64,000 nt of DNA from the IMG/VR virus record IMGVR_UViG_3300042868_007959, positions 62,001-126,000 of that record, one strand, 5' to 3'. The translations under genes and the position numbers were made by a program. Positions 30,053-47,024 of the stretch are shown in pieces. The notes below the pieces were generated by a model, which made no database searches, was not told where the DNA came from, and saw only the letters and a list, made by a program, of their open reading frames with translations. Numbering within the stretch: the first letter of the stretch is position 1; each line of letters starts with the position of its first letter.

Positions 30053-30056
30053 ATTT

Positions 30057-30202
30057 AAATGATAATCAGGATTAGATTATATACGTGCTCTACCAACTGA
30101 GCTACCGCCGCCCCGAAGGACAACGGACAGGATTCGAACCTGCGACACCGAGCTTAAAAGGCTAATGTAATTGTTGCTGAAACAATCCTTTTATTATCAT
30201 TT
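30057..30202 (-). ncRNA. Y-RNA-like (YrlA-like) RNA with circularly permuted tRNA-Lys module
   Basis: Terminal stem AAATGATAAT/ATTATCATTT; order: CT-TTT-AA hairpin, T arm, acceptor CCGTTGTCC-TTCG-GGGCGGCGG, D arm GCTCAGTTGGTAGAGC. Confidence 0.78.
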
Positions 30203-30203
30203 G

Positions 30204-30289
30204 AGGAAGAGGTAGGATTCGAACCTACGGTACCTTTCAGTACGCTAGTTTTCAAGACTAGTACAATAAACCAACTCTGTCACTCTTCC
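30204..30289 (-). tRNA. tRNA-Ser(TGA)
   Basis: CTAGT-CT TGA AA-ACTAG; long variable arm. Confidence 0.95.
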
Positions 30290-30298
30290 AATTTTTAC

Positions 30299-30315
30299 CA
30301 ATACGTCAAAGAACT
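30299..30315 (-). promoter_or_regulatory. boxA-like element
   Basis: AGTTCTTTGACGTATTG between the terminator and first tRNA. Confidence 0.7.
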
Positions 30316-30321
30316 AAAAAC

Positions 30322-30350
30322 AAAAAACCCTAAGTTCTCACTTAGGGTTT
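30322..30350 (-). terminator. Attenuator terminator 1
   Basis: AAACCCTAAG-TGAGAA-CTTAGGGTTT-TTT upstream of the tRNA-Ser(TGA) operon. Confidence 0.8.
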
Positions 30351-30379
30351 CCATTATATAGTATTTAAATTTTTAAATG

Positions 30380-30478
30380 TTATCTATTACAATATACCCT
30401 AAGATCTGGTTGCAGCGAATCCGCTCCCTCCATTTTCGTCTTAACGACCTCTAATCTGTATGTCATTGTATTTTTCAT
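30380..30478 (-). CDS. Putative leader peptide 1 (32 aa) MKNTMTYRLEVVKTKMEGADSLQPDLRVYCNR
   Basis: Manual translation; lies between promoter and terminator; contains antiterminator copy CTTAGGGT at 30396-30403. Confidence 0.6.
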   Translation of the reverse strand: MKNTMTYRLEVVKTKMEGADSLQPDLRVYCNR

Positions 30479-30509
30479 TGAAATTTTTACCTTTTTAATT
30501 AAATATACA

Positions 30510-30541
30510 TAAAGTTACGAAAGTTTCTTCAAAAAGTCAAA
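30510..30541 (-). promoter_or_regulatory. Bacteroidota-type promoter
   Basis: TTTGAC...TAACTTTA. Confidence 0.65.
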
Positions 30542-30578
30542 TAATTTTTAATTTTTTTTAAAATTTATTTTATTTAAG

Positions 30579-30652
30579 AGGTCAGAGAGGGATTCGAACC
30601 CCCGAATAATGGATTTGCAGTCCACCCCTTTAAACCACTCAGGCATCTGACC
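30579..30652 (-). tRNA. tRNA-Cys(GCA)
   Basis: GTGGA-CT GCA AA-TCCAT; U73. Confidence 0.95.
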
Positions 30653-30721
30653 ATTAGTTCACTAAACTATAATTTGCTCGATAAACTATATCTGTTTATT
30701 GTAGCAAAAATAAGTTTATTG

Positions 30722-30794
30722 TACACTCTGAGAGATTCGAACTCCCATCTTATAGTCCGTAGCCATATGTTCTGATCCGTTGAACTAAGAGTGT
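30722..30794 (-). tRNA. tRNA-Arg(ACG)
   Basis: TATGG-CT ACG GA-CTATA. Confidence 0.93.
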
Positions 30795-30796
30795 AT

Positions 30797-30871
30797 TGGT
30801 AGGGATGGGTGGAGTCGAACCACCGAGACAACTGTATAAGAGTTGCATGTTCACCGTTACATCACATCCCC
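30797..30871 (-). tRNA. tRNA-Ile(TAT), CCA encoded
   Basis: CAACT-CT TAT AC-AGTTG; A73-CCA. Confidence 0.88.
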
Positions 30872-30878
30872 ATTTTTG

Positions 30879-30966
30879 CGGAAAGAATAGGATTCGAACC
30901 TATGGTACCCTTACGAGTACAACACCTTAGCAGGGTGCCTCAATAAACCAACTCTGACATCTTTCC
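30879..30966 (-). tRNA. tRNA-Ser(GCT)
   Basis: GCACC-CT GCT AA-GGTGT; long variable arm; G73. Confidence 0.95.
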
Positions 30967-30971
30967 ATTTG

Positions 30972-31045
30972 GGTGTATGACGGGAATTGAACCCGTGACC
31001 TTTTGATTCACAATCAAACACTCTAACCAACTGAGCTACATACAC
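30972..31045 (-). tRNA. tRNA-His(GTG), no encoded G-1
   Basis: TTTGA-TT GTG AA-TCAAA; C73; base at -1 is T. Confidence 0.92.
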
Positions 31046-31047
31046 AG

Positions 31048-31118
31048 TTGTCTCCCAAGGATTCGAACCTCGATTCAGTGGTCCAAAACCACTTGTCCTG
31101 CCTTTAGACGAGGAGACA
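31048..31118 (-). tRNA. tRNA-Gln(TTG)
   Basis: AGTGG-TT TTG GA-CCACT. Confidence 0.93.
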
Positions 31119-31181
31119 ATTTAAAATTATTCACTACCCAAATATCGAATTTTTTACTACTTTTGGGAAGTTAATAATTAG

Positions 31182-31256
31182 TCTGGGTAGCGAGACTCGA
31201 ACTCACATTATGTCCACATCCCAAATGTGGCGGCTTACCAATTAGCCAATACCCAG
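31182..31256 (-). tRNA. tRNA-Pro(TGG)
   Basis: CCACA-TT TGG GA-TGTGG. Confidence 0.93.
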
Positions 31257-31263
31257 TTAAAAG

Positions 31264-31337
31264 TGGTGATGGGTGGAATCGAACCACCGACAACCTAGAT
31301 CTTCAATCTAGTGCTCTACCAACTGAGCTACATCACC
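31264..31337 (-). tRNA. tRNA-Phe(GAA)
   Basis: CTAGA-TT GAA GA-TCTAG. Confidence 0.95.
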
Positions 31338-31342
31338 ATTTG

Positions 31343-31415
31343 CACATCTCCAAGGATTCGAACCCTGATCAAACGATTTGGAGTCGTTTATGCTAAACCA
31401 TTACACCAGAGATGT
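31343..31415 (-). tRNA. tRNA-Trp(CCA)
   Basis: AACGA-CT CCA AA-TCGTT; G73. Confidence 0.95.
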
Positions 31416-31419
31416 GTAT

Positions 31420-31498
31420 AAATGTTCAGGAAGACTTTTTGTTTTCAAATTTCCGATCTTGATTTTTTTATTTTGCTGAAATCTTCCTTTTAACATTT
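31420..31498 (-). ncRNA. Minimal Y-RNA-like stem (no tRNA module)
   Basis: AAATGTT-AAAAGGAAGA-TTTCAGCAA...GTCTTCC-TG-AACATTT; same architecture as the 30057-30202 terminal stem. Confidence 0.65.
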
Positions 31499-31499
31499 G

Positions 31500-31582
31500 T
31501 GAGGGTAGTAGGATTCGAACCTACTCAGTCATAGACAACAGATTTACAGTCTGCCCCAACTCTCCAACTTTGGCGTACCCCC
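31500..31582 (-). tRNA. tRNA-Tyr(GTA)
   Basis: GCAGA-CT GTA AA-TCTGT; long variable arm. Confidence 0.95.
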
Positions 31583-31598
31583 ATTATTAATTTAATCA

Positions 31599-32138
31599 CT
31601 AAACATTTATTAAACCCGCATGTATTTCTGAATGACAATTAGAACACACTAAAATACATTTATCTACTTCATATTTTAATTTTTCGAAGGATAAACTTTT
31701 ACCTGATATTGTAAAATCTTTACTATTAGGATTTAAATGGTGGAATTCTAACGCATTAAAACATTTGTTATATCCACAAATTTGACACTTACCACCTTTA
31801 TATTCTACTAATCTAATTTTCACTCTCTTTCTCCATAAAATAACAGATTCAGAAGATGTCATTGTTTTAATTCTATCTTTAGTTTTAATATATTTTTTTA
31901 AAGTATCAAAAGAACGTTTAGTTATTTTAGATACTTTTTTTATTGAACCTAGTTCATCATATAATTTTTGATATAATTCAATGTCCTCTTTAGTAGTTTT
32001 TTGATTATTATCACCTAAACCATTCATTTTACAATGATAAGAAACTGTAGACATTGCACACCCTAAAATCTTAGTTATCTCTTTATACGTTTTACCTTCT
32101 TTTCTTAATTCTAAAATTTTTTTCGAATACCTTTCCAT
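31599..32138 (-). CDS. HNH homing endonuclease with N-terminal HTH
   Basis: KTYKEITKILGCAMSTVSYH; GGKCQICGY...LEFHHLNP...KCILVCSNCHSEIH. Confidence 0.9.
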   Translation of the reverse strand: MERYSKKILELRKEGKTYKEITKILGCAMSTVSYHCKMNGLGDNNQKTTKEDIELYQKLYDELGSIKKVSKITKRSFDTLKKYIKTKDRIKTMTSSESVILWRKRVKIRLVEYKGGKCQICGYNKCFNALEFHHLNPNSKDFTISGKSLSFEKLKYEVDKCILVCSNCHSEIHAGLINV

Positions 32139-32215
32139 AAGATTAACATTTTTAATTAATAAATATGGTATAATACTAATAATTTAATTTTAAAAAATCA
32201 ATAGGTAAAAAATTG

Positions 32216-32302
32216 CTGACGGGGTGGGATTCGAACCCACGGTGGAGAAATTCTCGTCGGATTAACAGTCCGATGCGTTCGGCCTACTACGCGAACCCGT
32301 CA
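32216..32302 (-). tRNA. tRNA-Asn(GTT) with long variable arm
   Basis: TCGGA-CT GTT AA-TCCGA; 16-nt variable arm with GAGA/TCTC stem; G73. Confidence 0.88.
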
Positions 32303-32315
32303 TTTACTTTCATAA

Positions 32316-32333
32316 CAATATGTCAAAGAACTT
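32316..32333 (-). promoter_or_regulatory. boxA-like element
   Basis: AAGTTCTTTGACATATTG. Confidence 0.7.
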
Positions 32334-32341
32334 TTGTTCTG

Positions 32342-32417
32342 TCGGTATGGTAGGGATCGAACCTACGAATCTTCTCGATATCAGCGAGATGCCTTAAACC
32401 AACTTGGCCACATACCG
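32342..32417 (-). tRNA. tRNA-Ile(GAT)
   Basis: TCTCG-CT GAT AT-CGAGA. Confidence 0.95.
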
Positions 32418-32426
32418 TAATAAATT

Positions 32427-32458
32427 AAAAAACCCCAACTCATTTCTGAATTGGGGTT
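32427..32458 (-). terminator. Attenuator terminator 2
   Basis: AACCCCAATTCA-GAAA-TGAGTTGGGGTT-TTTT. Confidence 0.82.
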
Positions 32459-32484
32459 CCACTTTGGTTTTATTTAATATCTAC

Positions 32485-32571
32485 TTAAAATTTATCCATA
32501 ATATACCCCAATCCGCCGCTATACGGTTGACACCATTGACTAAAATTAATATGTATATTATTTGTTTTCAT
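32485..32571 (-). CDS. Putative leader peptide 2 (28 aa) MKTNNIHINFSQWCQPYSGGLGYIMDKF
   Basis: Manual translation; contains antiterminator copy ATTGGGGT at 32505-32512. Confidence 0.6.
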   Translation of the reverse strand: MKTNNIHINFSQWCQPYSGGLGYIMDKF

Positions 32572-32596
32572 TTTTACTGTTATAATTAAATATATA

Positions 32597-32628
32597 CAAA
32601 TATAGGAAAGTTTCATTTAAAAGTCAAA
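32597..32628 (-). promoter_or_regulatory. Bacteroidota-type promoter
   Basis: TTTGAC...TATATTTG. Confidence 0.72.
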
Positions 32629-32768
32629 TATATTTTAAAATTTTTTTTTATTGGTAATATGGTACGTATTTTGTTAAGGTTATTTTCTTAATAACTAACA
32701 CCGTAAAAATATAAAACCCCCTTACACTAATAAGGGGGTTTATTTTTAATAACCAACAAAGTTTATTA

Positions 32769-32939
32769 CTACTTAACTTCGTTTGAAGTTGCTTCTACTG
32801 AAGTACTATCACTAGTAGTTACATTAGAAGTTGCTTCTGAAGTTGCTTCTGTACTTGCGTTTTCAGATGCTTCTGTTGAGTTACCTCCGCAAGACACTAA
32901 CAATGACATTACGGTTAATACTAAAAAAATTTTTTTCAT
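32769..32939 (-). CDS. 56-aa Ser/Thr-rich lipoprotein
   Basis: MKKIFLVLTVMSLLVSC-GGNSTEASENASTEATSEATS...; lipobox; followed by terminator ~32714-32742. Confidence 0.8.
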   Translation of the reverse strand: MKKIFLVLTVMSLLVSCGGNSTEASENASTEATSEATSNVTTSDSTSVEATSNEVK

Positions 32940-33090
32940 TTTAAAAAATTTAATTTAATTGTTATTAAGGCTTTTCACCCATCGGAGATTATAAGTATCT
33001 CTAACTTCTTTTATGTTACAAATTTAACATAAATATATTAAATGTCAAAATATTATAACACTATTGTTAAATATTTTAACATATTTTAGG

Positions 33091-33393
33091 TTATTCCTTA
33101 CCATATTTTTTTCTTAAATATTCTCCCCAATCTGACTGTTTCCTTCCATTTACAAAGAACCATCCTAAATTTAGTTCAAACCATTTAATAAATTTATTTA
33201 CTAAAATCATAATTAAAAAATTTAAAGTTACTACAAAAAATACAACATATGGTAATAAAGGGATCCAACTGATAACTTTACCATACCATTTTAAACTATC
33301 CTTCATTACCCCTTCACAAACCAATATATACTGGATGAATAATAGAAAGAAAATAAATAAAAAAACAACTGTTATTCCAATAATCTCAAACAT
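33091..33393 (-). CDS. Membrane protein
   Basis: Two hydrophobic segments. Confidence 0.7.
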   Translation of the reverse strand: MFEIIGITVVFLFIFFLLFIQYILVCEGVMKDSLKWYGKVISWIPLLPYVVFFVVTLNFLIMILVNKFIKWFELNLGWFFVNGRKQSDWGEYLRKKYGKE

Positions 33394-33401
33394 AACTAAT
33401 C

Positions 33402-33635
33402 TTATTCTGATTTTTTAATAATTTCACAATCAACTAAATATTTAGAAGGTATTGTGACTCTGTGTTTTCCTCTAGGTGGTGAAAGTTTAATTAAATGACT
33501 ATCATCCGCTTCTAAAATTAAACAATCATTTGTTTTTTCAATTACAAACCAAATTTTAGTTTTATCATTATGACTGTAAAATCTTTTAGATGTAAAAGTT
33601 ACAACATCACCAACAATACATTCTTCTTCTGTCAT
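33402..33635 (-). CDS. Hypothetical protein
   Basis: ORF track. Confidence 0.6.
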   Translation of the reverse strand: MTEEECIVGDVVTFTSKRFYSHNDKTKIWFVIEKTNDCLILEADDSHLIKLSPPRGKHRVTIPSKYLVDCEIIKKSE

Positions 33636-33795
33636 ATCATTTCTTTTTTTGTGAGTTTAACACGTATTACTTCTCCACCTTCAAAATTTTCAAAAATATT
33701 TTGTGTAAAAACATTACCTATTTTTATAGATTTATCTTTTGTAAAAAATGATGTTATTTTACCTCGTTTACTTTTCATATATATGTAAGGCATAG

Positions 33796-34017
33796 TTATT
33801 TCTTTTTAAATTGTTCAAACCACTGTGTTAACGACATTCTTTCTCCACCACCTAAGAAATATTCTGTATGTTTAAATAAAATATCATATACTTCTTCCTC
33901 ACTATAACTATTTTCTTTACATTCTGTATAACCACGTTTGAATGCAATTCTTTCCATCAATTGATTTTCATCTGAGTAAAAATCTTTTGCAAGTTCTTCA
34001 AGTGTTTCTTGTTTCAT
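33796..34017 (-). CDS. Hypothetical protein, paralog of the 24534-25277 C-terminus
   Basis: KQETLEE...YSEEEV...WFEQFKKK. Confidence 0.75.
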   Translation of the reverse strand: MKQETLEELAKDFYSDENQLMERIAFKRGYTECKENSYSEEEVYDILFKHTEYFLGGGERMSLTQWFEQFKKK

Positions 34018-34478
34018 AACTTTTCTTTTACAAGTTCAATTAGTTTTGTTAGACAAGCAAGTTCTGCGTCTTCGTATGTTCTATATATGTCAGAATATTG
34101 ACCTATATTATTTTCCCAACCCCACTCTTGTTCAGTTAGATCTTTTGGGTTTCCATAAAATGTGTTATAGGTAAAAACAAATTTAGGTTCTGTGGTACAA
34201 TCGGTTAACACTTCGGGAAATATCAGGTACTTCTCTCTAAACCATCTAAATGCTTGTGAGTATGTTGGTGCTGCAACTCTAAGTGAATTAAAATCGTTGA
34301 CATAAAACTTGCTACTTTGTGTACCATTAATTCTAAATCCTGAAGAATACAATCTTACCGTATCTGTTATGCTAAAATTTTGTTCATCAAATCCTGACCA
34401 TATAGCAAAACATGATCCATCATATCTAAGTTGCTTCATTCTTAAAGCTAACTCATAAGGTACAAATTCTTTTTCCAT
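34014..34478 (-). CDS. Hypothetical protein, tandem paralog 1
   Basis: MEKEFVPYELAL...APTYSQAFRWFREK...AELACLTKLIE. Confidence 0.8.
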   Translation of the reverse strand: MEKEFVPYELALRMKQLRYDGSCFAIWSGFDEQNFSITDTVRLYSSGFRINGTQSSKFYVNDFNSLRVAAPTYSQAFRWFREKYLIFPEVLTDCTTEPKFVFTYNTFYGNPKDLTEQEWGWENNIGQYSDIYRTYEDAELACLTKLIELVKEKL

Positions 34479-34481
34479 AAC

Positions 34482-34910
34482 TTATTTATTTTCTACAATT
34501 TCAATTAGTTTTTCAAGACAAGCAAGTTCTGCTTCAGGATAAGTATCAAATGTTGGATGACCATTGTTTATAGTAGCAACTATATAACCACTAATTTCAG
34601 TTTCATTACTAATAGTAGATTTGATTACACACAACCACTTATCATTATAAATGTTGATTGAAGGATATAAATTATGCTTCTCTCTAAACCATCTAAATAC
34701 TTGTGAGAATGTTGGTGCTGAAATATAGTGTTCAGGTATCTCTGAATTTTTACAAGTTCTATATCCTGTTAACAAATATTGTTCATTATCATCAACCATA
34801 ATAGGTCTGATTTCGGCAGATTCTTTTTGATAAAAACCAAAACAAGGTTCATCAAATCTAATTGCTTTTAATCTTAATGCTCTATCATAAGGTACAAATT
34901 CTTTTTCCAT
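34482..34910 (-). CDS. Hypothetical protein, tandem paralog 2
   Basis: MEKEFVPYDRAL...APTFSQVFRWFREK...AELACLEKLIE. Confidence 0.8.
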   Translation of the reverse strand: MEKEFVPYDRALRLKAIRFDEPCFGFYQKESAEIRPIMVDDNEQYLLTGYRTCKNSEIPEHYISAPTFSQVFRWFREKHNLYPSINIYNDKWLCVIKSTISNETEISGYIVATINNGHPTFDTYPEAELACLEKLIEIVENK

Positions 34911-35150
34911 ACTTTTATATATTTAACGGTATTTTTCAGAAAATTCTTCATCTACTAATTCAGTAGGATATTCATCCACAATATGACGTTTCCACCAAGA
35001 TATGATATATAATTTAATTTTTTTTATCATAATTACTAATGTTGATTACTGTATAGATTTGCCAATATTAGTCTAACCATTCTGAATTCTCTAACTTTTT
35101 TCAAATTCAGATCGTACTTATCGGCAATATATTTTAAATGAGGATACGCC

Positions 35151-35333
35151 TCACTTATTGTCATTTCCCCTATTCGCATATTCTTCATAATCTTCTTTAT
35201 TTACACAAACATAAACATCCTGATACCAACCAAAAACACATTCATCATACATTTTATATGGTTTGAATTCATCCCAATTAAAGTTATCGATAGTGTCATA
35301 ATATGACTCATTAGGGAAACGTACTCTAGTCAT
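35151..35333 (-). CDS. Hypothetical protein
   Basis: ORF track. Confidence 0.6.
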   Translation of the reverse strand: MTRVRFPNESYYDTIDNFNWDEFKPYKMYDECVFGWYQDVYVCVNKEDYEEYANRGNDNK

Positions 35334-35571
35334 TTAATTAGGGTATTTTTTAACATACTCCACCATTAAATTAGATAGGTATTTCATATTTCTCGATAAT
35401 TCTATTTTTCTAACTTGTTCTTCTGCAGTTAGTCTTTTATGGTTACTTCTACCATTTCTGTTTAACCATTCTTCAAACATTCTTTCGTAATATCCTTCTG
35501 GTGGCATAGTCTTTTATTTTAAAACAAATATATAAATTATTTTTGAATAAACAAAGTAATTTAAAAAATAA

Positions 35572-36141
35572 TTAATCCCACCATCTTTCGATGTGATTAC
35601 TAATTATATTAAATAACAATTTATGACATCTTTCTTGATTCTCATGTGCAATTTCCATCGCAATTAATTTTTTATCCTTTTCCTCAATAGGACGGTTATA
35701 TCTATTTATTACTCCACTTAAAACTTTTTTATACTGTATCGGATACTTTTTGAAGTATTCGTCAAAATTTTCAGATATTAACTCATCTTCCATTGTATAA
35801 TATTCCTCAGTCTCGTCAGTAGGTACAAACTCAAATTTAGATTTATGATAATCCATATATTCCATACCATAAGTGTCATCCTGCTGAAGTTTTATTAGTC
35901 TAGATACTAACAACATACGTTCCGCATCACGTTTGGCTTCAGTATGGAAATTCCTATCACCTATATATTTCGCCTGATTCTCAATTTTAACTCTAAGAAT
36001 CTCATATATGAAAAAAGAATCCCAATCCCTATCTTTCCAAATAGTAGGGAACCATTTCCATAGGTTTTTTACACCTTTAATAAAGTCTTTATGGTAGTAT
36101 CTTGCTTCAAACCTCCACCAATATCTTATTTTATCTATCAT
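35572..36141 (-). CDS. Conserved phage hypothetical protein
   Basis: WFPTIWKDRDWD...IERWWD. Confidence 0.78.
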   Translation of the reverse strand: MIDKIRYWWRFEARYYHKDFIKGVKNLWKWFPTIWKDRDWDSFFIYEILRVKIENQAKYIGDRNFHTEAKRDAERMLLVSRLIKLQQDDTYGMEYMDYHKSKFEFVPTDETEEYYTMEDELISENFDEYFKKYPIQYKKVLSGVINRYNRPIEEKDKKLIAMEIAHENQERCHKLLFNIISNHIERWWD

Positions 36142-36314
36142 ATTAAAATTTATTAGGTTTTAAAAAACTAATTATAAATCCGTAAAAGTAAATGTATTTT
36201 ACATAACCTTGCATTTGACTAAATGTGAATTTATTTGAAATGGATAATCCATACCCAAATATTCTGAACCAAAAAAGTCCACTTCCTTTATACCAACTAA
36301 AAATTTTTTTCATA

Positions 36315-36809
36315 TTATACCATTAAAAATTGTTTCCATTCTTCTTTAATTATACCATTCATTCTTTCTATGAATTGGATGTATGTCGGAGTAAATGGTT
36401 TTCTTAAAAATACCATATCCGCTTCTTCAGGTGTTCTATCATCTTTTTTTAGATTGCATATTCCACAACAAGTAACTAAATTTTTCCAACTATTATCCCC
36501 ACCTCTAGACTTAGGAAGAACATGATCGATAGTTAAATTTTTATTTGTTCCACAGTATACACATTTATGTCCATCTCTCCTAAAAATATTAAATCTACTT
36601 AAAGGAACTTTTTTATATGGCATATAAATAAATCTATTTAATCTTATAACTGAAGGTCTATTAAAATTCTTAAAACTCGATATGATAGGGTTAGACTCGT
36701 CAGAATATACTATCTCCGCCTTTCCCTTGTAAACTAATTTAAACCCTCTATTAAGTGTGGTTACATTTAATGGGGTATAGTCATTATTTAAAACTAATAC
36801 CTTTTCCAT
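36315..36809 (-). CDS. HNH endonuclease (McrA-like/HNH_5 type)
   Basis: VLVLN..Y.PL, PSVIRL, RRDGHKCVYCG, TIDHVLPKSRGG, CCGICN.KK. Confidence 0.92.
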   Translation of the reverse strand: MEKVLVLNNDYTPLNVTTLNRGFKLVYKGKAEIVYSDESNPIISSFKNFNRPSVIRLNRFIYMPYKKVPLSRFNIFRRDGHKCVYCGTNKNLTIDHVLPKSRGGDNSWKNLVTCCGICNLKKDDRTPEEADMVFLRKPFTPTYIQFIERMNGIIKEEWKQFLMV

Positions 36810-36824
36810 AAAACTCTATTTTTT

Positions 36825-37445
36825 TTATAAATGGGATTGTAAAATATCCCTACAATACATTTCTAAATTTGGGTACTCATTTAACACTTCTTTATTTAAA
36901 ACCATACCCCCACTAAACTCTAATTCAGATTTGACAACATGTGTTTGGTTAAATTCATCATTCAATAGTTGGTTATATATTCTAACCCTCTTCGTGTTGA
37001 ATAAATCTGTTTCTTCCCCCAATTTATAATCTGGTGCCCCAAAATACCCAAAAGACGCATAAGGGTGATCCTTTAAAATATTTTTTATTTCACCTACTAA
37101 TAATGAGAATATTTTAAAGGGGATATTCTCTTTAGTTTGGTAACTATATTTATCATAAAACTTTTGTCCTTTATCTGCCAATCTTTGTTGTCTTACATAA
37201 AAATCAGTATTAAGTTTGGGGAAAAAAGAAATAAGGAAATAATCATATTCATACTCCTCTATATGTACAATGTATTTGTATTTAGGAGTATGAAAAGTAT
37301 ACACTCTTAATTTTTTATACTTATTATCAGTCTTAGGATTTTGTGTTTGAACATATCTCCAACCAAACTTATCCCTAAGTTCATCCGATTGTTCTTGTGA
37401 AAATTTAATTTCGTTTAATATCCTTTTAATTTTTTTCTGTAACAT
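36825..37445 (-). CDS. Hypothetical protein
   Basis: ORF track; KKIKRILNE N-terminus. Confidence 0.75.
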   Translation of the reverse strand: MLQKKIKRILNEIKFSQEQSDELRDKFGWRYVQTQNPKTDNKYKKLRVYTFHTPKYKYIVHIEEYEYDYFLISFFPKLNTDFYVRQQRLADKGQKFYDKYSYQTKENIPFKIFSLLVGEIKNILKDHPYASFGYFGAPDYKLGEETDLFNTKRVRIYNQLLNDEFNQTHVVKSELEFSGGMVLNKEVLNEYPNLEMYCRDILQSHL

Positions 37446-37623: not shown

Positions 37624-37794
37624 AATCTTTTTATCTATAAAGTAAAATTAATAAAAAAATCCGAATCTGCCAAATTTTTTTATATAAATATTTGTTAAAA
37701 ATAAAAAAGTCCCGAATTAACGGGACTTTAAAGGGCCGATAGGATCACTATCAACTTCCACCACTTCGTTTTTAAGGAACAAAGAAACCTAATG

Positions 37795-38192
37795 TGGAGA
37801 TGGAGGGAGTCGAACCCTCGTCCAATCAAATTGCCATTAAAAATTCATTCACAAGCTTAGTTCATTTTTCTTAATGAACAAAATATTTGGTTTTATTTAT
37901 AACATGGTTACCAACAACCCTGTTTCGATAATTGTTTAGAGAGTTTTACCGTCAACTCTATTTTTTACACCTTTCTGTTTCTAGGTAAGTGTGACCCACC
38001 GATTAAACTAATTCCATTAATTCAATCTCTTCAACCACCGCTGAGCGAGTGATAGAAGTTGGGATACTCATCATATCCTCTGTGTTGTATGCGTTTGCAT
38101 TTATATTTTGATAGGTGTTTAAGGGTTTCCATCTAACCCTGCTTGCATCATTTCAAACTCAACCTTTGACTGTCAAATCCAAAACCATCCCC
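37795..38192 (-). ncRNA. ssrA: tmRNA
   Basis: 5' GGGGATGGTTTTGGATTTGAC; 3' GAGGGTTCGACTCCCTCCATCTCCA; G3:U70; resume context ATAAAT-GCA; tag ORF 38003-38098; no encoded CCA. Confidence 0.93.
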
Positions 38193-38194
38193 AG

Positions 38195-38208
38195 TTTTCA
38201 AAGAACTT
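38195..38208 (-). promoter_or_regulatory. boxA-like element
   Basis: AAGTTCTTTGAAAA, 2 nt upstream of tmRNA. Confidence 0.6.
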
Positions 38209-38978: not shown

Positions 38979-38979
38979 C

Positions 38980-39847: not shown

Positions 39848-39897
39848 AGTTTAAAATTATTGGTAAATATAAGTAAAATAGTTTAATAAAAAAAATT

Positions 39898-40323
39898 TTA
39901 TTGTAAATTATTAATCTTATCATAAATTTTATGGAGTGTATTATCTATCTGAGATTTAATCTGATTTTCATACATTATCCTTTCCTCATCCACTTTTTTA
40001 TCAAAATGGTTAACTAATTTAACTATATCTTTTTTGGGTAATGTAATTACATAATGATATACGTGATTAGTTATTTCAACTTTACTATCTTCCATTATCA
40101 CAAAAATATCAATAGTTTTATTCACTAGATATCTCTTATTAGATAATGGGGCAATTGTATATTTAGTATCTTTGTGATTTATAGTCTTTCTAACTATTGC
40201 AGTACATATAGCTTCATAACCTGTATATTCAAACTTATCTTTAAAAATAGATGCTTCAAATAATTTATAGTTAACAACTATTTTTTTAAGTTTTTTTCTT
40301 AAATAATTTTTAAACCAACCCAT
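39898..40323 (-). CDS. Hypothetical protein
   Basis: ORF track. Confidence 0.72.
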   Translation of the reverse strand: MGWFKNYLRKKLKKIVVNYKLFEASIFKDKFEYTGYEAICTAIVRKTINHKDTKYTIAPLSNKRYLVNKTIDIFVIMEDSKVEITNHVYHYVITLPKKDIVKLVNHFDKKVDEERIMYENQIKSQIDNTLHKIYDKINNLQ

Positions 40324-40324
40324 A

Positions 40325-41230
40325 TTATTTATTTTCTTTATAAAGTTTCAATAGTCTTTCTTTAGCGTAATCACAATAATCCTCAACTAAATCAATCCCT
40401 ATATACTGTCTTCCCATTTTAGATGACGCATACGGTGTAGTTCCTGTACCTGAAAAATTATCTAAAACAATATCATTCGGTTTAGAATATAAGTCAATAA
40501 AATAATTTGCGAACTCTGTTGAGAAAGTTGCTTCGTGTCCTTCTACTTTACCATCATTATTTTTAGCCTCTATAAAATTATAATAGGTATTAAAATATTT
40601 TTGTCCTGTTTTAGAAAGTGACGATACTATTTTATTGGTGGCAAAATTAGGTGTTTTCGCAAATATATAAACCATCTCAACAATTCTAGTTAACCTATTT
40701 GGTTGACCACTTAATGGTACACAAGATTTCTTTTTCCAAGCTGCGGTATCATATATCTCTAATGAAGTGTTTTCAAATACTTCGTTAATTAATAGATAGG
40801 GTAACGATGGATTAAATGTAGTGTAACTATAATTAAATACGATTACACCATCATCAGTTAATATCCTTTCATATTGTTTAAAAACATCTATTAACCAACT
40901 AATGTATTCTTTAACAGGTTGGTTATCCTTTATAAGGTCTTTCGCACCTGGATATTTATGATTATCTTTTCTTATAGATGCTAAATAGGGTGGAGATGTT
41001 AAAATTAAATTAATACTCTTATCTTTAATTTTTTTCATTGTCTCAACAGTATCTCCACAGTATATCTGATTGGTTATTAATCCAACATCTACAGAATTAA
41101 CAACATTAGTTACTTCTTCAGTAGTGTCAACAATAACGTCATTTTGTTTATCGATAATAATTTTTTCCATAGTAATTTCATCAAACAAACTTAATTGTTC
41201 ATTTTTTCTTTTTTTAGGTATTCTTCCCAT
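40325..41230 (-). CDS. N4-C/N6-A DNA methyltransferase (beta class)
   Basis: LTSPPY ... VLDNFSGTGTT. Confidence 0.92.
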   Translation of the reverse strand: MGRIPKKRKNEQLSLFDEITMEKIIIDKQNDVIVDTTEEVTNVVNSVDVGLITNQIYCGDTVETMKKIKDKSINLILTSPPYLASIRKDNHKYPGAKDLIKDNQPVKEYISWLIDVFKQYERILTDDGVIVFNYSYTTFNPSLPYLLINEVFENTSLEIYDTAAWKKKSCVPLSGQPNRLTRIVEMVYIFAKTPNFATNKIVSSLSKTGQKYFNTYYNFIEAKNNDGKVEGHEATFSTEFANYFIDLYSKPNDIVLDNFSGTGTTPYASSKMGRQYIGIDLVEDYCDYAKERLLKLYKENK

Positions 41231-41235
41231 AATAA

Positions 41236-42144
41236 TTAAAATATATGTTTAAATAAATCTAACTGAGTCCCATATGGTGGTAATATATATTTGTTTTCAC
41301 CATAATTCATAATGAGGATTTCTTGACCCATATTTTGTTTAACCCCACTTTTAGCGGCTGCCGCCTTTGCAAACTCTTTTGTTTCCCAAACATAATCGTT
41401 TTTAGGGAACCATTCCCTAAGTAATGGGAAATCATAATAACTTAAAGAGAATTTACCCTTTATAGATTTTAACGAAATTGCTAACCTTTCGTGATCACTT
41501 CTATCAAAATCATGATTAGAATAATAATTTTCTGTTTTCCAATAAGGTGGATCCACATAAAAATAAGTTGTTTCTGAATCATACTTCTGTATTACATCAT
41601 TAAAATCTAAATTTTCAACAAATGAAATCCTATCAAAGTGTTCTCTATATTTTGGATCTTTTAATTTGTCCATAAAAATTAAAATCTTACATCTATATTT
41701 ACCTTTATAATCCATATAATTAGATGTTTCAGGTTTAGATCCAGAAAATATTTGTGTTAAGACATACACATATTTTGCAGCAATTTCATATTTATTTTCT
41801 TCAGTAATTGGAATACCAAAGGAACCGAATAATTCCTTTTGGTATTCCGCAAACATTTCTGAATAAATTTGAGGTGTTTCTGATATACCTAATTGTTGGC
41901 AAGGATAGTTTGAAAGTTCATCCCATAACCTATCATAGTCTTTACAACAATTTAATAGATTCGCATTTAACCCATTAAAATCATTATAGACAACTGTTTT
42001 AAGATTTGGGTACTTTTTCAAATCCATCTTAAAGAATACCCAAAACATACCACTAAATGGTTCAACATATGTTTCTATGTCTTCTGAAATAAATGGAACG
42101 ATCCATTTAGATATTCTCGCCTTACCTCCAATATAACTTATCAT
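41236..42144 (-). CDS. dam: Dam-family (D12) adenine methyltransferase
   Basis: YIGGK, YVEPFSG, VYNDFN, FYVDPPY. Confidence 0.9.
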   Translation of the reverse strand: MISYIGGKARISKWIVPFISEDIETYVEPFSGMFWVFFKMDLKKYPNLKTVVYNDFNGLNANLLNCCKDYDRLWDELSNYPCQQLGISETPQIYSEMFAEYQKELFGSFGIPITEENKYEIAAKYVYVLTQIFSGSKPETSNYMDYKGKYRCKILIFMDKLKDPKYREHFDRISFVENLDFNDVIQKYDSETTYFYVDPPYWKTENYYSNHDFDRSDHERLAISLKSIKGKFSLSYYDFPLLREWFPKNDYVWETKEFAKAAAAKSGVKQNMGQEILIMNYGENKYILPPYGTQLDLFKHIF

Positions 42145-42353
42145 TAGTCTCTTCTACTTTTTTCGATATGCATTTTTATTCTCTCAACTTTTTGAAGTAG
42201 GAATTCTCTATCTTCACTACTGAGTTCAATGGTTTCTGACCATTTCATTCCTAACACACTCATCAACTCCCAATTCTTTTCTTGTATCGATAAAGTGGGA
42301 TCTGTAGCGAGTTTATTTATCGTATTTTCATTATTTGACTGCATCTTCTTCAA
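42144..42353 (-). CDS. Hypothetical protein
   Basis: ORF track. Confidence 0.6.
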   Translation of the reverse strand: MKKMQSNNENTINKLATDPTLSIQEKNWELMSVLGMKWSETIELSSEDREFLLQKVERIKMHIEKSRRD

Positions 42354-42756
42354 TTTGTTTTTGTTCTAAAAGTACTGAGATACTTTCTTTTATTGACTGG
42401 TACGTATCTATACCGTATTTTCTTAATACCCCACTAAATGTACTTACATCAGGATTGATAATTGTAATTTTATCTTTATCCATATCATATACAATCTTAG
42501 CTAAAAGATCATTTACGACATATTCTTTTTGGGTGTCCTCCAACTGATCAAATATTGGTTCGTTAACTTGAATTATGATATCATAATCAGTCATATATTT
42601 TACAATATCTTGTGATTTATTTACCAAACCAAAATCTTTCTTTATTTTGTTATTAGATAAGATTTTAATTTTAATAAATTTAGGAATGGAACTTTCATTA
42701 ATGTGTTTTTGAAACAATTCCAAAGTGTCTTCAAAAACTTCTTCAAATTTTGACAT
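42331..42756 (-). CDS. Phage metallopeptidase-like protein lacking HExxH
   Basis: G.V.K....KY.T.YD.II...DV..F..VL.KYG frame; VNDLLAK where HELxH is expected. Confidence 0.5.
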   Translation of the reverse strand: MSKFEEVFEDTLELFQKHINESSIPKFIKIKILSNNKIKKDFGLVNKSQDIVKYMTDYDIIIQVNEPIFDQLEDTQKEYVVNDLLAKIVYDMDKDKITIINPDVSTFSGVLRKYGIDTYQSIKESISVLLEQKQIEEDAVK

Positions 42757-42811
42757 ATTTTTTTATTTTTTAATTATTAATGGACAATATTAATCATTTA
42801 TTTTCATAATA

Positions 42812-43807
42812 TCAAATTTTTAATGATTTTATTTTTTCTTTTTCTTCTTTATCTATATTTGAAGGTATGTCAACCCATATTTCTAATAACATATCCCCTG
42901 TCATATTATCCCTTACAAACCCTTTATTAGGAACTCTTAACATTGTACCTACTTTAGTACCTGAAGATATTTTAAATCTTATTTTTTTATCCATAGTATC
43001 TACCTCAATAGAATCATTACCTAATACTAAATCCTTATAGGAAAGATTTACTTTCTGGTATATGTCTAATCCCACCCTTTTAAATTTTTCATGTAGAATT
43101 TGTACTACATTAATTAATAAGTCACCTTCTAAACCATTCCTAATTGCGTTACCCATATTATAAACTCTCAATGTTTCACCATCCATAATTCCTTTAGGTG
43201 TATCAAATTCAAATGTCTTATCTTCTTTAATTACACCATTACCTACACAGGTACCACATTTTTTTGTAATTATATTCCCTTCACCATTACACTTAGGACA
43301 GTGAACAGTACTCTGCATTTTACCAAATGGGGTATTCTGAACTTGATTAACCATACCAATCCCATTACAAGTGTCACAACTAATACTATCACCACCAGTC
43401 CCACCACAAGGTGTACATTTTACAAATTTTTTATATATAATTTTTTTATTCGACCCATTATATATTTCTTCTAAAGTGAGTTTAAGATTTATCCTTATGT
43501 CCCCGCCTTTGGATCTCCTATTCTTAATACTACCGTAAAAAGAGGATAATATGTCTTCCATATTATCACCAGCAAATGGATTAGTCCTACCATCTGCAGT
43601 ACCAAACCTATCATAATTTAATTTTTTTTCTTTATCGGACAATACCGAATACGCTTCCGCAATAGATTTAAATTTTTCTTCTGACTCTTTATTATCTGGA
43701 TTTAGATCTGGATGATGTTCTTTAGATAGTTTCCTATACGCCTTTTTTATTTCAGTTTCATCGGCATTTTTACCCACACCTAAAATATTATAATAATCTT
43801 TACTCAT
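42812..43807 (-). CDS. dnaJ: DnaJ chaperone
   Basis: [11 protein letters not shown], four CxxCxGxG repeats, C-terminal domain. Confidence 0.96.
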
Positions 43808-43861
43808 TCTTTATATTTATTTTTTATAAATTATAAGTATTTTTAATTAAAAAATAAAGGT

Positions 43862-44512
43862 ATGGTGTATAGAATTATTATTACCCAGAATGGTAAGAAA
43901 AGAAAAATACTTTATGAGGGGAGAAATGAGAATACTGCAAAGGAAAAATACTTTTCCTCAAAAGATGAAAATATAGTTTTATTACCTAAAAAAAACAATA
44001 CATATAAGAAAATTAAACCAGTGAGTTTTGAAATTCTTTTATTGAAAGAAAAGGAATGGAATGATGTGGATTACTTTGATAGGGATGACTTAGGTAGAAC
44101 TATACCTGTAACATTAAATAGTGATAAATGGAACTTAATACATAAATCAGAATATTTTTATGAGGAGAAATTTAGTGTGTTTGGTTATAAAGAAAGGATG
44201 GACACTAAAAAAATATTAAAACTTTTTTTACTTAATAGAACTAAAGAAGATAAAATTAAACAAGTTAATTACATTAACAATAAATTATTAATATATCAGA
44301 ATTATGATTTTGATATAATTATCTGTAAAAATTCTTATGATACTAAAAGACTATACAATGTCCTTATTGAATTTTGTGAAACGAATAATGTGGATAACAT
44401 TTTATTTACGGGATCAGTAAATAAAAAAAATAGGACTAAAACTTATAAAAGAATTGTAGAAAAAACTGGGTGGACAATTAATAAAACTTATAGATCATCC
44501 ACCCGTCCTTAA
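43862..44512 (+). CDS. Hypothetical protein
   Basis: ORF track; convergent with 44513-44986. Confidence 0.75.
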   Translation: MVYRIIITQNGKKRKILYEGRNENTAKEKYFSSKDENIVLLPKKNNTYKKIKPVSFEILLLKEKEWNDVDYFDRDDLGRTIPVTLNSDKWNLIHKSEYFYEEKFSVFGYKERMDTKKILKLFLLNRTKEDKIKQVNYINNKLLIYQNYDFDIIICKNSYDTKRLYNVLIEFCETNNVDNILFTGSVNKKNRTKTYKRIVEKTGWTINKTYRSSTRP

Positions 44513-44986
44513 TTATTCTACTCCCACTTGAAATTTATTTGATATATCCTCAATTAAATCATTAAGTCTATCAAACTCACTCTCATCTTTAATGTGGACA
44601 GGGTTAATACACTTAATTTCTTCCTTATCATCGGTAGGTAAAAAGAATAGTCTAACTTCATCCCCTTTATTTTCCAAATAGGTTCTCACACTCTCACCAT
44701 AAGTTTCTATCATCTCCCTATTGGCAAATAAATCTCTCTGTAAGTAAAAAACTAAAATTAAAGGTGTGTAACTACTATTTTGTGTTTTAAATTTCTCTAA
44801 CGTAACGTATTCGATATCCTTAGTCGATACATCATATGTTTCACTTAACATATTTTCTTTTTGAGTTCTATCTTCTTCACCAACCGCATCTTTACATTCG
44901 ATAGGATTTCCGTTATCATCATTTACATAAATTAAATAATGTCTAATCCCTTTTTCTAATCTGTTATTTTTAGTAACAATTTTCAT
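44513..44986 (-). CDS. Hypothetical protein
   Basis: ORF track. Confidence 0.75.
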   Translation of the reverse strand: MKIVTKNNRLEKGIRHYLIYVNDDNGNPIECKDAVGEEDRTQKENMLSETYDVSTKDIEYVTLEKFKTQNSSYTPLILVFYLQRDLFANREMIETYGESVRTYLENKGDEVRLFFLPTDDKEEIKCINPVHIKDESEFDRLNDLIEDISNKFQVGVE

Positions 44987-45060
44987 AAATTATATTTTGT
45001 CAATTTTATTATTTTAAATAATTTTAATAAAAATATTTTAAACTGTAAATGTTATAAAAT

Positions 45061-45092
45061 AAAAAAGGGAAAGTATTTCTACTCTCCCTTTT
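45061..45092 (-). terminator. Intrinsic terminator
   Basis: AAAAGGGAGAGT-AGAAAT-ACTTTCCCTTTTTT. Confidence 0.75.
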
Positions 45093-45097
45093 AAATT

Positions 45098-45590
45098 TTG
45101 GTGTCGGAATGGTGATCCTTCTTTTATTTTCGGTGGTAGAGTACCCACCCTAAGTATTTTAATCCGTTCTAGTTCGGATGTCTTATTATTTAGTTGAGAC
45201 AAAACCAACTACTATTTTTTACTTGTAGTAAACAAGAGGTATGTTTTACGACCTAAAGTGTAGGGGTTTCCTACGTTTAAACTCTCCTATGGTCGCCACT
45301 TTATATTTTTTTTCGAGTAAAGTGGTAAAACTCTGATCTATCTGCTTTTTTTCTAGTAAGTGTTTGCAGAAACCATTCGTTTATCGGACTTAAAGGGAAT
45401 TCGTATATTCCCAATCCATTACACCTAATAACATTGTGGTATCGGAATTGTCTGACACTTTACATAACTCTGAGTGGTCCCCCGCTTTCACGGTTTACAC
45501 CCTTATGGTTATATGGGTTATCAAAGCCCCTCTTTCTTAGCTGAATTGTAGTTTTTTAATTTTGCTGCAATTATTCCTTAGCTACCACAA
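45098..45590 (-). ncRNA. Unidentified ~490-nt multi-hairpin RNA region
   Basis: No ORF; more than 10 hairpins; long-range TTGTGGTA/TACCACAA pairing; bounded by boxA and a terminator; 5' part carries the AAGGA..TT.CAGCAA Y-like motif. Confidence 0.6.
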
Positions 45591-45607
45591 ATATTTTCAA
45601 AGAACTT
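45590..45607 (-). promoter_or_regulatory. boxA-like element
   Basis: AAGTTCTTTGAAAATATT immediately after the DUF2828 stop codon. Confidence 0.6.
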
Positions 45608-45608
45608 A

Positions 45609-47024
45609 TTATACAGTTATTACACTATATCTTTTATCATTAACAGTATCCATCATTATGGATTCTGGTGTCATATTTTTACCCCCTAATAGAGACTTTA
45701 GTATTGATGGACTAAATCCCGAAACTAATGCAGTTCCGTTTTTATCAAACTCAACTGGAAAGTTACCACCACTAGAATTTAAATTCCAATATACTACATT
45801 AGGCATTTTATATCCTGCCTCTTTATACATTTCCTCAATCATCGATTGTGCACCCAAACTATTTCTTCTAGTTGCCTGATTGAATTGCATATCAGATAAA
45901 ATTAATATCTTAGTCGGCATAAATTCCTCACTAATATTATTGTTTTTTGCCTGAGTTAGAATTAAGTTAAATACTTTTTCTAAATTAGTACTCATACCCC
46001 AATCTGAACTTATTAATTGTGATAGTCTTTGTTCTAAACTACCTTTTAAATACTGTAATTCAGGACTTTCGGAAAATGTAATAAATGCATCTTTGAAGTT
46101 ACCTTCACTTCTTTCAGAAATATACATACCTAATGATACTGCAATATCCATACAAGTTAGGTTTGGGTTACCTCCCGCTGGACATTCCATAGACCCTGAA
46201 ACGTCAACAACTGGTAAAATTCTTTCTTCAGATCCCTCCATCCAATTAGGTAGTGACTCCCACTGTTTACTATTTACTACTTCATCACCACCCATCTTCA
46301 TAGATTTTATAATGTCGTATGGGTAAACCGCACCTGCATTAACTTTTGCAGTTCCTTCAATTAGAGAATTTTTATACTCCTCATATCTTTCAATATCATT
46401 TCTTTTAAATGATTTTTGGTATCTTGATGATGCCAATGAAGGAATTTTTGAGTAGTCGATTGATTCCCAATCTTTTGAACACATCTTAGTTTCTACAACA
46501 TTAGTTAAATCAACTAACATTTTTCTATATTGTTTAGGAGTAGTTTTAAATAATCTTCTAAGTTTATTTGCCACTTCACCTTTTCTAGGCATCCATTTTG
46601 CACAAAGTCCATCACCGTTAGTTAATGCGGTTTTGATAATTTCAAACATTTCATCCTCTAATTCGGTACCCATAAGGACTAATATATCATCCCATCTACC
46701 AAACTCTGAAATAAAATTTATATTTTTTCTAAGTGTTATAGGTGAGTTGACAGATAGATACTCAATAACGTCTCTAAATACTTTTCTTTCACCCGCACCA
46801 CTTCTAATATCTCTAACCCAAAAAAGTATTTTTGTTGCCACTAAAGGATTTTCTAAAAAGGCTTGATTAAAAAGTTTATTAACCAATTCTTTAGATTTTC
46901 CTCTCATCGCCCCAATAGCGAAAAATAAATCCACACACTTATTAAGTGTCGTAGGATTGGTAACCATACCATTATCGGTTAATGTTACATTTTGTTCTTC
47001 CGTATTAGTTAACTGAGTGTCCAT
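45609..47024 (-). CDS. DUF2828-family protein (helical N-terminus + vWA; TROVE/Ro60-like architecture)
   Basis: RDIRSGAGER, GRWDD, AKWMPR, NAGAVYPYDI, VDVSGSM MIDAS, ILSDMQFN, YWNL, VSGFSP. Confidence 0.85.
   Translation of the reverse strand: MDTQLTNTEEQNVTLTDNGMVTNPTTLNKCVDLFFAIGAMRGKSKELVNKLFNQAFLENPLVATKILFWVRDIRSGAGERKVFRDVIEYLSVNSPITLRKNINFISEFGRWDDILVLMGTELEDEMFEIIKTALTNGDGLCAKWMPRKGEVANKLRRLFKTTPKQYRKMLVDLTNVVETKMCSKDWESIDYSKIPSLASSRYQKSFKRNDIERYEEYKNSLIEGTAKVNAGAVYPYDIIKSMKMGGDEVVNSKQWESLPNWMEGSEERILPVVDVSGSMECPAGGNPNLTCMDIAVSLGMYISERSEGNFKDAFITFSESPELQYLKGSLEQRLSQLISSDWGMSTNLEKVFNLILTQAKNNNISEEFMPTKILILSDMQFNQATRRNSLGAQSMIEEMYKEAGYKMPNVVYWNLNSSGGNFPVEFDKNGTALVSGFSPSILKSLLGGKNMTPESIMMDTVNDKRYSVITV

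Follow-up and report, generated by a model that had tools for sequence, protein, structure and literature searches.

We found that a 64,000-nt stretch of the genome of a freshwater jumbo phage (here called the window; positions 62,001 to 126,000 of the 253,879-bp IMG/VR record IMGVR_UViG_3300042868_007959) encodes a DUF2828 protein with a predicted Ro60-like fold and carries RNA elements in which the 5' strand of a closing stem is followed by the hexamer CAGCAA. We consider it likely that the protein and the CAGCAA elements represent a diverged lineage of the Ro/Y-RNA type and that the elements are the cognate Y-like RNAs. Ro60/Y-RNA particles occur in animals, in about 5% of bacteria, and in a few phages, and to our knowledge all known particles use a related RNA docking motif.

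The protein gene lies on the minus strand, which carries nearly all genes of the region.

45609 to 47024, minus strand: gene for a 471-amino-acid (aa) protein, predicted to be Ro60-like, with a HEAT-repeat ring plus a domain of the von Willebrand factor A (vWA) type (Pfam, PHROG, AlphaFold2 [AF2], and Foldseek)

Pfam assigns the protein to DUF2828 and DUF7788, and PHROGs assigns it to phrog_850, "RNA-binding protein." The Pfam TROVE model (PF05731) had no match anywhere in the genome, and it did give matches in control genomes. A profile search of PDB sequences gave marginal matches to Ro60, so a comparison of folds was needed. We modeled the protein with AF2 using 61 diverse homologs and obtained a predicted local distance difference test (pLDDT) score of 92 and a predicted template modeling (pTM) score of 0.91. 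When this model was compared with the PDB using Foldseek, the best 13 matches were all Ro60/Rsr structures (frog, human, Deinococcus, and Thermus phage phiLo). They covered the full length, with E values of 3e-9 to 4e-6 and template modeling (TM) scores up to 0.67, and the matches ranked after them covered the vWA domain only. At the sequence level, similarity to Ro60 was marginal (E about 0.002 to 0.08; 0.0024 with phmmer against the phiLo TROVE protein), and the weak matches were exclusively to Ro60/TROVE chains. The initial annotation of this DNA had proposed from the architecture that DUF2828 and TROVE are related; this holds at the level of the fold. The model predicts with high confidence that the protein folds as a Ro60-like ring plus a vWA domain.

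We also found that the MIDAS motif (DxSxS; metal ion-dependent adhesion site) is intact: D274, S276, S278, T346, and D378 are invariant across the 61 homologs. An RDxRGGxGER motif and several Arg and Lys residues of the helical ring are conserved in the same set. The family is large, with 6,807 clusters at 50% identity. The gene is present in 711 cultured phage records, at 31 to 50% identity over the full length, where it is annotated as "RNA-binding protein," "Ro-like RNA binding protein," "vWFA protein," or hypothetical.

Two of the elements lie between tRNA genes.

30203 to 30289, minus strand: tRNA-Ser, whose 3' end touches the 5' end of element 1 (ARAGORN)
30053 to 30202, minus strand: element 1, a candidate Y-like RNA of 150 nt (minimum free energy [MFE] fold, partial YrlA match, R1 match, and tRNA borders)
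29977 to 30052, minus strand: tRNA-Asp, whose 5' end touches the 3' end of element 1 (ARAGORN)
31499 to 31582, minus strand: tRNA-Tyr, whose 3' end touches the 5' end of element 2 (ARAGORN)
31416 to 31498, minus strand: element 2, a candidate Y-like RNA of 83 nt with a short A-rich insert (MFE fold, R1 match, and homologs)
31342 to 31415, minus strand: tRNA-Trp, whose 5' end touches the 3' end of element 2 (ARAGORN)

Element 1 exactly occupies the gap between tRNA-Ser and tRNA-Asp, and element 2 exactly occupies the gap between tRNA-Tyr and tRNA-Trp. The initial annotation had placed the elements at 30057 to 30202 and 31420 to 31498, and these limits are corrected here by the ARAGORN borders. 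Its description of the fold stands: the stem sequences of the two elements differ and their pairing is retained. In the MFE folds of both elements, an AAA/G internal loop separates an outer stem from an inner stem that begins with AGGA and ends with UCCU, and the hexamer stands at the 5' edge of what the inner stem encloses. In element 1, the inner stem is AGGAUUG/UAAUCCU and is followed by UUU-CAGCAA (z = -3.6). In element 2, the outer stem is AAAUGUU/AACAUUU and the inner stem is AGGAAGAUUU/AAGUCUUCCU (z = -2.75).

The two elements differ in what the stem encloses. The insert of element 1 is a permuted tRNA mimic. Its parts are a hairpin whose 7-nt loop reads CUUUUAA, a T arm (canonical T loop), an acceptor stem of 9 bp under a UUCG cap, and a D arm. 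Only this tRNA-like core is matched by the YrlA model of Rfam (33.2 bits; E, 6e-6; model positions 24 to 84). The score is below the YrlA gathering score of 69 bits, and the parts of the model that describe the closing stem are unmatched. Element 1 reads AGGAUUGUUUCAGCAA, and its closing stem lacks CGAA, so it does not contain the GNCGAAN(0-1)G site that YrlA has near the 5' end. In a homolog of element 1 from a related phage (G003), the acceptor and T stems are maintained by compensatory changes. Among the elements of the window, the tRNA-like domain (T arm, capped acceptor stem, and D arm) is found only in element 1 and is absent from element 2 and from a third candidate, element 3, described below. 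Homologs of element 2 are present in three loci (G002, G003, and L150).

The pattern AAGGA-N(2-6)-T[TG]CAGCAA, which was composed after the sites were known, has exactly three matches in the window, all on the minus strand (30174 to 30190, 31473 to 31489, and 45562 to 45579), and the shuffle expectation is 0.01 matches. No additional match was found elsewhere in the whole genome. The claim of a three-member stem motif therefore stands in part: the three matches exist and elements 1 and 2 fold as had been claimed, but the hairpin drawn for element 3 is unsupported.

The initial annotation had named co-occurrence of the motif with DUF2828 across phages as a check on its proposal. We examined 89 IMG/VR loci from other phages, whose homologs share 36 to 60% identity. 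Within 700 nt of the gene, 169 CAGCAA sites lie on the gene strand in 120 kb and 31 on the opposite strand, a 5.5-fold enrichment; farther from the gene, the density is about 0.35 per kb. A closing stem is present at 64% of the 169 gene-strand sites, compared with 12 to 19% elsewhere. The full architecture of stem, spacer, CAGCAA, and closing strand occurs 75 times on the gene strand and twice on the opposite strand. The consensus is (U)AGG-NNNN(N), about 3 nt, CAGCAA, a cargo of 20 to 250 nt, and (N)NNNN-CCU-G. Tandem arrays of two to five elements are frequent. When elements were called by stem-plus-motif criteria or by the covariance model described below, 62 of the 89 loci had one within 2.5 kb of the gene on the gene strand, versus 16 of 89 on the opposite strand.

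We built a covariance model, R1, from 31 short members, all from phages other than that of the window. The stem is 92 to 94% paired, with covariation scores of 0.62 to 0.74 versus 0.17 in shuffles and at most 0.14 in slid registers; because complementarity was the basis for choosing the R1 seeds, there is some circularity in these pair counts. No such dependence affects the statistics on strand and position. At E values of up to 0.1, R1 gave 77 matches in 1.15 Mb of DUF2828 loci, every one of them on the gene strand. The top R1 match in the window is element 2, over its full length (42 bits; E, 1e-6), although R1 was built without it. The second best is the 5' half of element 1 (24.2 bits; E, 0.009). 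A further match at 27900 to 27961 on the plus strand (E, 0.056) reads CAGCAU, lies on the strand opposite to the genes, and is probably due to chance. No further R1 match was found in the rest of the genome. We define the family by a covarying closing stem, a 1- to 4-nt spacer, and CAGCAA, encoded on the same strand as a DUF2828 gene of that genome; elements 1 and 2 conform to this definition.

An IMG/VR pattern scan with the 5' motif alone gave 119 loci; nearly all were chance matches, and the closing stem was present in only one. We reused them as controls. In 100 control loci (813 kb), each of which contains the bare 5' motif, R1 gave four matches in two records, and both records also encode DUF2828.

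The same arrangement is present in distant cultured phages. In Felix O1, the gene (ORF42) lies directly upstream of a tRNA cluster, and R1 matches occupy the gaps between tRNA-Glu and tRNA-Met and between tRNA-Met and tRNA-Asn, with another after tRNA-Asp followed by a tRNA-like member. In the mycobacteriophage BigCheese, the "Ro-like" gene is followed by three elements that read GUGG-NNNN-UAA-CAGCAA ... NNNN-CCAG, without tRNA genes between them, and the middle element contains a full tRNA mimic. In Listeria phage LP-048, three tandem R1 matches (E, 4e-7, 5e-7, and 2e-3) lie directly upstream of the gene; downstream of it, at a distance of 1.3 kb, its strand also encodes an RtcB-like ligase. 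As a side observation, the RtcB-like ligase and an HD phosphohydrolase are encoded just 3' of the DUF2828 gene on this strand (positions 6825 to 8036 of locus L240), a layout that mirrors the bacterial rsr-yrlBA-rtcBA operon.

Transcripts have been reported from a relative of LP-048. In a 2025 study of the Listeria P100-like phage CKA15, three unannotated regions on the strand of the Rsr-like gene CKA15_055, at less than 2 kb upstream of it, were very highly transcribed, and the authors propose that these regions might be Y RNAs (PMC12282133). The Rsr-like protein, which is encoded outside the structural module, was also detected in purified virions (20 peptides; 57% coverage) (PMC12282133). 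The CKA15 gene is of the DUF2828 type, and the related LP-048 has exactly three R1 matches where CKA15 has its three abundant transcripts. The CKA15 study differs from ours in that it defined no motif, structure, or family and left open the nature of the RNAs.

Canonical phage Ro60 proteins with Yrl RNAs carrying the CGAA motif were already known (PMC4201824, PMC12135203). We used two phages with canonical TROVE genes, Bxz1 and CcrColossus, as a specificity control. Both have YrlA-type Rfam matches beside the TROVE genes, and R1 had no match anywhere in either genome. The initial annotation had noted that the motif differs from the known GNCGAAN(0-1)G site, and the two phages bear out this distinction.

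The elements could instead be processing or punctuation structures of tRNA operons, or free tRNA-like decoys, that are independent of DUF2828 and merely share a "tRNA region" with it. In favor of this, the elements of the window and of Felix O1 occupy gaps in tRNA clusters; element 1 is also mostly a tRNA mimic, and elements 1 and 2 are distant from the protein gene. However, in BigCheese and in many metagenomic loci the elements adjoin the gene without tRNA genes between or around them, the tRNA-rich phage Bxz1 has no R1 match, and both control records with R1 matches encode DUF2828. A single-stranded hexamer that does not vary, next to a stem that covaries freely, also looks like a sequence-specific protein site rather than a generic RNase site. 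We therefore think this explanation decidedly unlikely and favor elements that are cognate to the protein.

As the initial annotation had stated, the third motif lies directly downstream of the DUF2828 vWA gene; it is 30 nt past the stop codon. It is part of a much larger RNA than had been drawn.

45102 to 45577, minus strand: conserved structured RNA of about 476 nt, directly 3' of the protein gene (covarying stems and metatranscriptome contig ends)
45434 to 45590, minus strand: module A, from RNAalifold pairing (both helices kept in eight sequences, with one compensatory pair each)
45061 to 45088, minus strand: terminator-like hairpin and U run closing the noncoding region (sequence; the stem covaries in relatives, columns 542 to 569)

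The noncoding stretch after the gene is about 550 nt long and is 86% identical in relatives whose proteins share 80 to 84% identity. It contains many covarying stems and ends in the terminator-like hairpin. We found that a contig from a lake metatranscriptome, with sequencing adapters at both ends, corresponds exactly to 45102 to 45577. The contig depth is 21.6 over this region versus 2.6 to 6 over the protein gene; the metatranscriptome contigs are strandless, and their depth is a rough guide only. Contigs from two further metatranscriptome runs stop at 45103. The contig ends and depth are consistent with an abundant, discrete RNA, about 476 nt long, that begins at the first G of GGAAU. This RNA starts with GGAAU-AAUUG-CAGCAA, which is element 3 of the initial annotation. 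RNAs of the large type are found in five further loci of the 89.

The initial annotation had drawn element 3 as a hairpin at 45538 to 45583, and this did not hold up: the fold is no better than shuffles (z, +1.26). RNAalifold on a short stretch at element 3 gave a local hairpin in which CAGCAA pairs with UUUGUG upstream of it; this hairpin showed no covariation, and we prefer the long-range helices obtained with more sequences. With eight sequences, some from phages at just 56 to 58% protein identity, the conserved pairing partners of the motif lie about 130 nt or more downstream. In helix 1 of module A, UUGUGGUA (45590 to 45583) pairs with UACCACAA (45441 to 45434). In helix 2, GGAAU (45577 to 45573) pairs with AUUCC (45448 to 45444), and CAGCAA follows at 45567 to 45562. 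A second module of the RNA reads GAAUGG-UUU-CUGCAA (45378 to 45364) and is closed by CCAUUC (45112 to 45107). The CUGCAA variant is common to this module and the G003 copy of element 1. We also observed that the later half of the RNA (45107 to 45433, minus strand) is a conserved multihelix domain, closed by GAAUGG/CCAUUC, with no Rfam match.

Element 3 may lie outside the family; the CAGCAA after the stop codon would then be there by chance, or would be an unrelated part of some other large noncoding RNA or of a 3' untranslated region. The R1 score (13.6 bits; E = 2) and the poor local fold point this way. So do the spacer of 5 nt rather than about 3 nt, the closing strand CCG rather than CCU, and an inner helix that is disrupted by a C-C pair in two relatives. 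Against these stand the retention of GGAAUAAYUGCAGCAA directly 3' of the gene at just 56 to 58% protein identity, the mapped RNA 5' end at the exact start of the stem strand, and a second module that follows the same plan with CUGCAA, a variant that recurs in the element 1 homolog. We regard a separate origin of element 3 as a minority possibility, to be taken seriously, and favor its membership in the CAGCAA family.

The expression of the large RNA also bears on whether the motif acts as DNA, for instance as a promoter, operator, or recombination site. The motif is short, conserved, and tandemly repeated in intergenic DNA, as such a site might be. A DNA site would not be expected to be covered as RNA with discrete ends, as one member is, nor to keep its stem pairing through compensatory changes that include G-U pairs, nor to enclose inserts with tRNA-like folds. 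The strict strand bias with the gene (77/77) argues in the same direction, and we consider a DNA-level role highly improbable compared with one as RNA.

Several observations besides the circularity of the pair counts weigh against a cognate Ro/Y-RNA-type system. About a quarter of the DUF2828 loci have no element by the criteria used. For YrlA, the expected position is within about 4 kb of the Ro gene on the same strand. Most other phages have their elements within 0.7 kb of the gene. In the window, element 3 is adjacent and elements 1 and 2 are 14 to 15.6 kb away on the same strand, so the linkage of these two rests on the family pattern elsewhere. The hexamer of the G003 homolog of element 1 is CUGCAA, and CAGCAA is thus not absolutely invariant. 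R1 on element 3 is not significant, and the closing helix of element 3 has two rival partners, AUUCC at 45448 to 45444 and at 45110 to 45106. Finally, the specificity control consists of two TROVE phages that are both GC-rich, and R1 is AT-biased.

Taken together, the system resembles known Ro60/Rsr systems in several ways. The protein combines a HEAT-repeat ring with a vWA/MIDAS domain, as TROVE proteins do. In most of the other phages, small RNAs lie near the gene on the same strand, often several per locus, and an RtcB-type ligase is associated with the gene in one Listeria phage. Like Y RNAs and YrlA (RF02553), the elements combine a closing stem, which carries a short conserved motif, with a module that varies, and in element 1 this module is tRNA-like (T arm, capped acceptor stem, and D arm), as in YrlA. 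In contrast to Ro60/Rsr, the DUF2828 protein has no Pfam TROVE match and marginal sequence similarity. The motif CAGCAA lies just 3' of the 5' strand of the stem, whereas GNCGAAN(0-1)G or CGAA of known Y RNAs lies within the stem. The elements differ from YrlA also in that the Rfam model fits only the tRNA-like core, several tRNA-like members add a hairpin resembling an anticodon arm, and arrays of up to five are often embedded among tRNA genes, with cargo from about 20 to about 450 nt. The protein family is the same as that labeled PHROG 850 or "Ro-like RNA binding protein" by SEA-PHAGES (BigCheese gp55, LeBron gp53, and Felix O1 ORF42), but those labels annotate the protein only, via remote homology, and the records annotate no RNA partner. 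Phage annotations thus already describe the protein as Ro-like. What appears to be new is the family of RNAs, with its motif, breadth, and location between tRNAs. Rfam 15 has no family matching the CAGCAA RNAs. We found no publication that defines the CAGCAA family or ties DUF2828 to RNAs; the literature search was incomplete, and earlier work is possible.

These comparisons suggest a model. The gene at 45609 to 47024 would encode a ring protein of the Ro60 type, from a lineage placed by Pfam in DUF2828/DUF7788 and not in TROVE. Each RNA would have a closing stem of 6 to 11 bp, usually AGG.../...CCU, whose 5' side is followed by about 3 nt and a single-stranded CAGCAA. Ro60/Rsr proteins bind Y RNA on the outer face of the ring. 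The putative docking site here is the stem together with CAGCAA, in analogy to the GGUCCGA/GNCGAA site of Ro60 and Rsr, and we infer that the protein physically binds them. The stem would enclose a variable cargo: a permuted complete tRNA mimic in element 1, a short A-rich hairpin in element 2, and a large structured domain in the 476-nt RNA. Elements 1 and 2 would be transcribed within the tRNA cluster and cut out by RNase P at the 3' border and tRNA 3' processing at the 5' border. Because they exactly fill the tRNA-tRNA gaps, trimming of the neighboring tRNAs would free them as RNAs of 150 and 83 nt; RNase P cleavage at the 5' end of tRNA-Asp, for example, would release element 1. The particle would probably display tRNA-like modules to host or phage RNA enzymes. 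Candidate partners are PNPase or another 3'-5' exonuclease, enzymes that modify or repair tRNA, and tRNA-cleaving defense nucleases. By analogy, the particle could tether a host exonuclease.

We also observed hairpins that resemble anticodon arms. In element 1, the hairpin before the T arm (30128 to 30170, minus strand) has a 7-nt anticodon-like loop. Many tRNA-like members have such a hairpin just before the T arm (CUUUUAA, CUUAUAA, CUGUUAA, and CUGUAAA), for example, those at the following locations.

L010, 9297 to 9414: tRNA-like member with an anticodon-like loop
L016, 11925 to 12040: tRNA-like member with an anticodon-like loop
L239, 6497 to 6620: tRNA-like member with an anticodon-like loop
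L200, 1317 to 1436: tRNA-like member with an anticodon-like loop

Several short members contain only the anticodon-like hairpin, with the loop CUUGUAA, CUUUUAA, or CUUCUAA. These loops resemble those of tRNAs for codons that start with A. Among the 59 7-nt loops in MFE folds, 20 are anticodon-like, which is modest support for anticodon mimicry.

A more specific function is conceivable but doubtful, namely, that the DUF2828 ring, directed against host nucleases that cut tRNA anticodon loops, shows mimics of tRNAs or anticodon arms, either as decoys or as a platform for repair or sensing, and so acts as a counter-defense particle. The basis for this idea is that CUUUUAA, CUUGUAA, and CUGUUAA resemble the Lys, Thr, and Asn anticodon loops and that the gene adjoins tRNA clusters and co-occurs with Rnl1 or RtcB ligases. 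Since the protein has been reported in virions of one Listeria phage, it could act from the first moment of infection. A role in tRNA-cleavage conflict is thus an attractive alternative, suggested by the mimicry, the position, and the ligases, and it is unproven.

The initial annotation had also noted that Ro60/Rsr genes associate with RNA-repair genes. We found none adjacent to the protein gene here. The sole RNA-repair enzyme detected in the genome is encoded in the window, about 38 kb from the protein gene.

6315 to 7370, minus strand: T4 Rnl1-type RNA ligase (PF09511; E, 1.7e-18)

Neither RtcB nor an Rnl2-type ligase was found in this genome. The ligase belongs to a gene set for tRNA repair and maturation (4988 to 7370 and 12426 to 13160, minus strand). 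In this set, a metallophosphoesterase is encoded two genes from the ligase, and the gene directly upstream of the first tRNA cluster encodes a CCA-adding-like nucleotidyltransferase. NAD salvage genes (NAMPT and a phosphoribosyltransferase) sit between the ligase and the nucleotidyltransferase.

The virus record has a G+C content of 29%. The window contains about 30 tRNA genes in two clusters and a transfer-messenger RNA (tmRNA) gene (ARAGORN and Rfam). Besides the ligase and the CCA-adding-like enzyme, its other genes include those for DnaJ, two DNA methyltransferases, and homing endonucleases. Portions of the region are present in lake and other freshwater metatranscriptomes, and a megablast search of the region against cultured phages gave no match. 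Three further features on the minus strand concern tRNA-like genes. At 16402 to 17035, three paralogous tRNA-like genes have a common acceptor stem and a common T arm. They are tRNAs by Rfam but not by ARAGORN; in two, of 117 and 125 nt, the anticodon region contains long insertions, and a small open reading frame follows each gene. At 13878 to 13970, ARAGORN predicts a 93-nt tRNA with a four-base anticodon (uaca). At 37792 to 38192, there is a phage tmRNA (Rfam, 113 bits) whose predicted tag peptide is unusually long.

These data suggest that a Ro-like lineage that has diverged in sequence has its own RNA code, a stem plus CAGCAA, and that its cargo modules are interchangeable. Among phages, this lineage is very widespread, with 711 cultured records and thousands of metagenomic clusters. 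DUF2828 occurs also in plants and other eukaryotes, so the idea of RNA binding may extend beyond phages. If the model is correct, it would name the partner RNAs of a large phage family of "RNA-binding proteins," explain why tRNA clusters of model phages, Felix O1 among them, have gaps without annotation, and give an identity to the abundant Listeria P100-like phage transcripts that are so far unexplained. It would also make available tractable laboratory systems for studying the role of Ro-type particles during infection.

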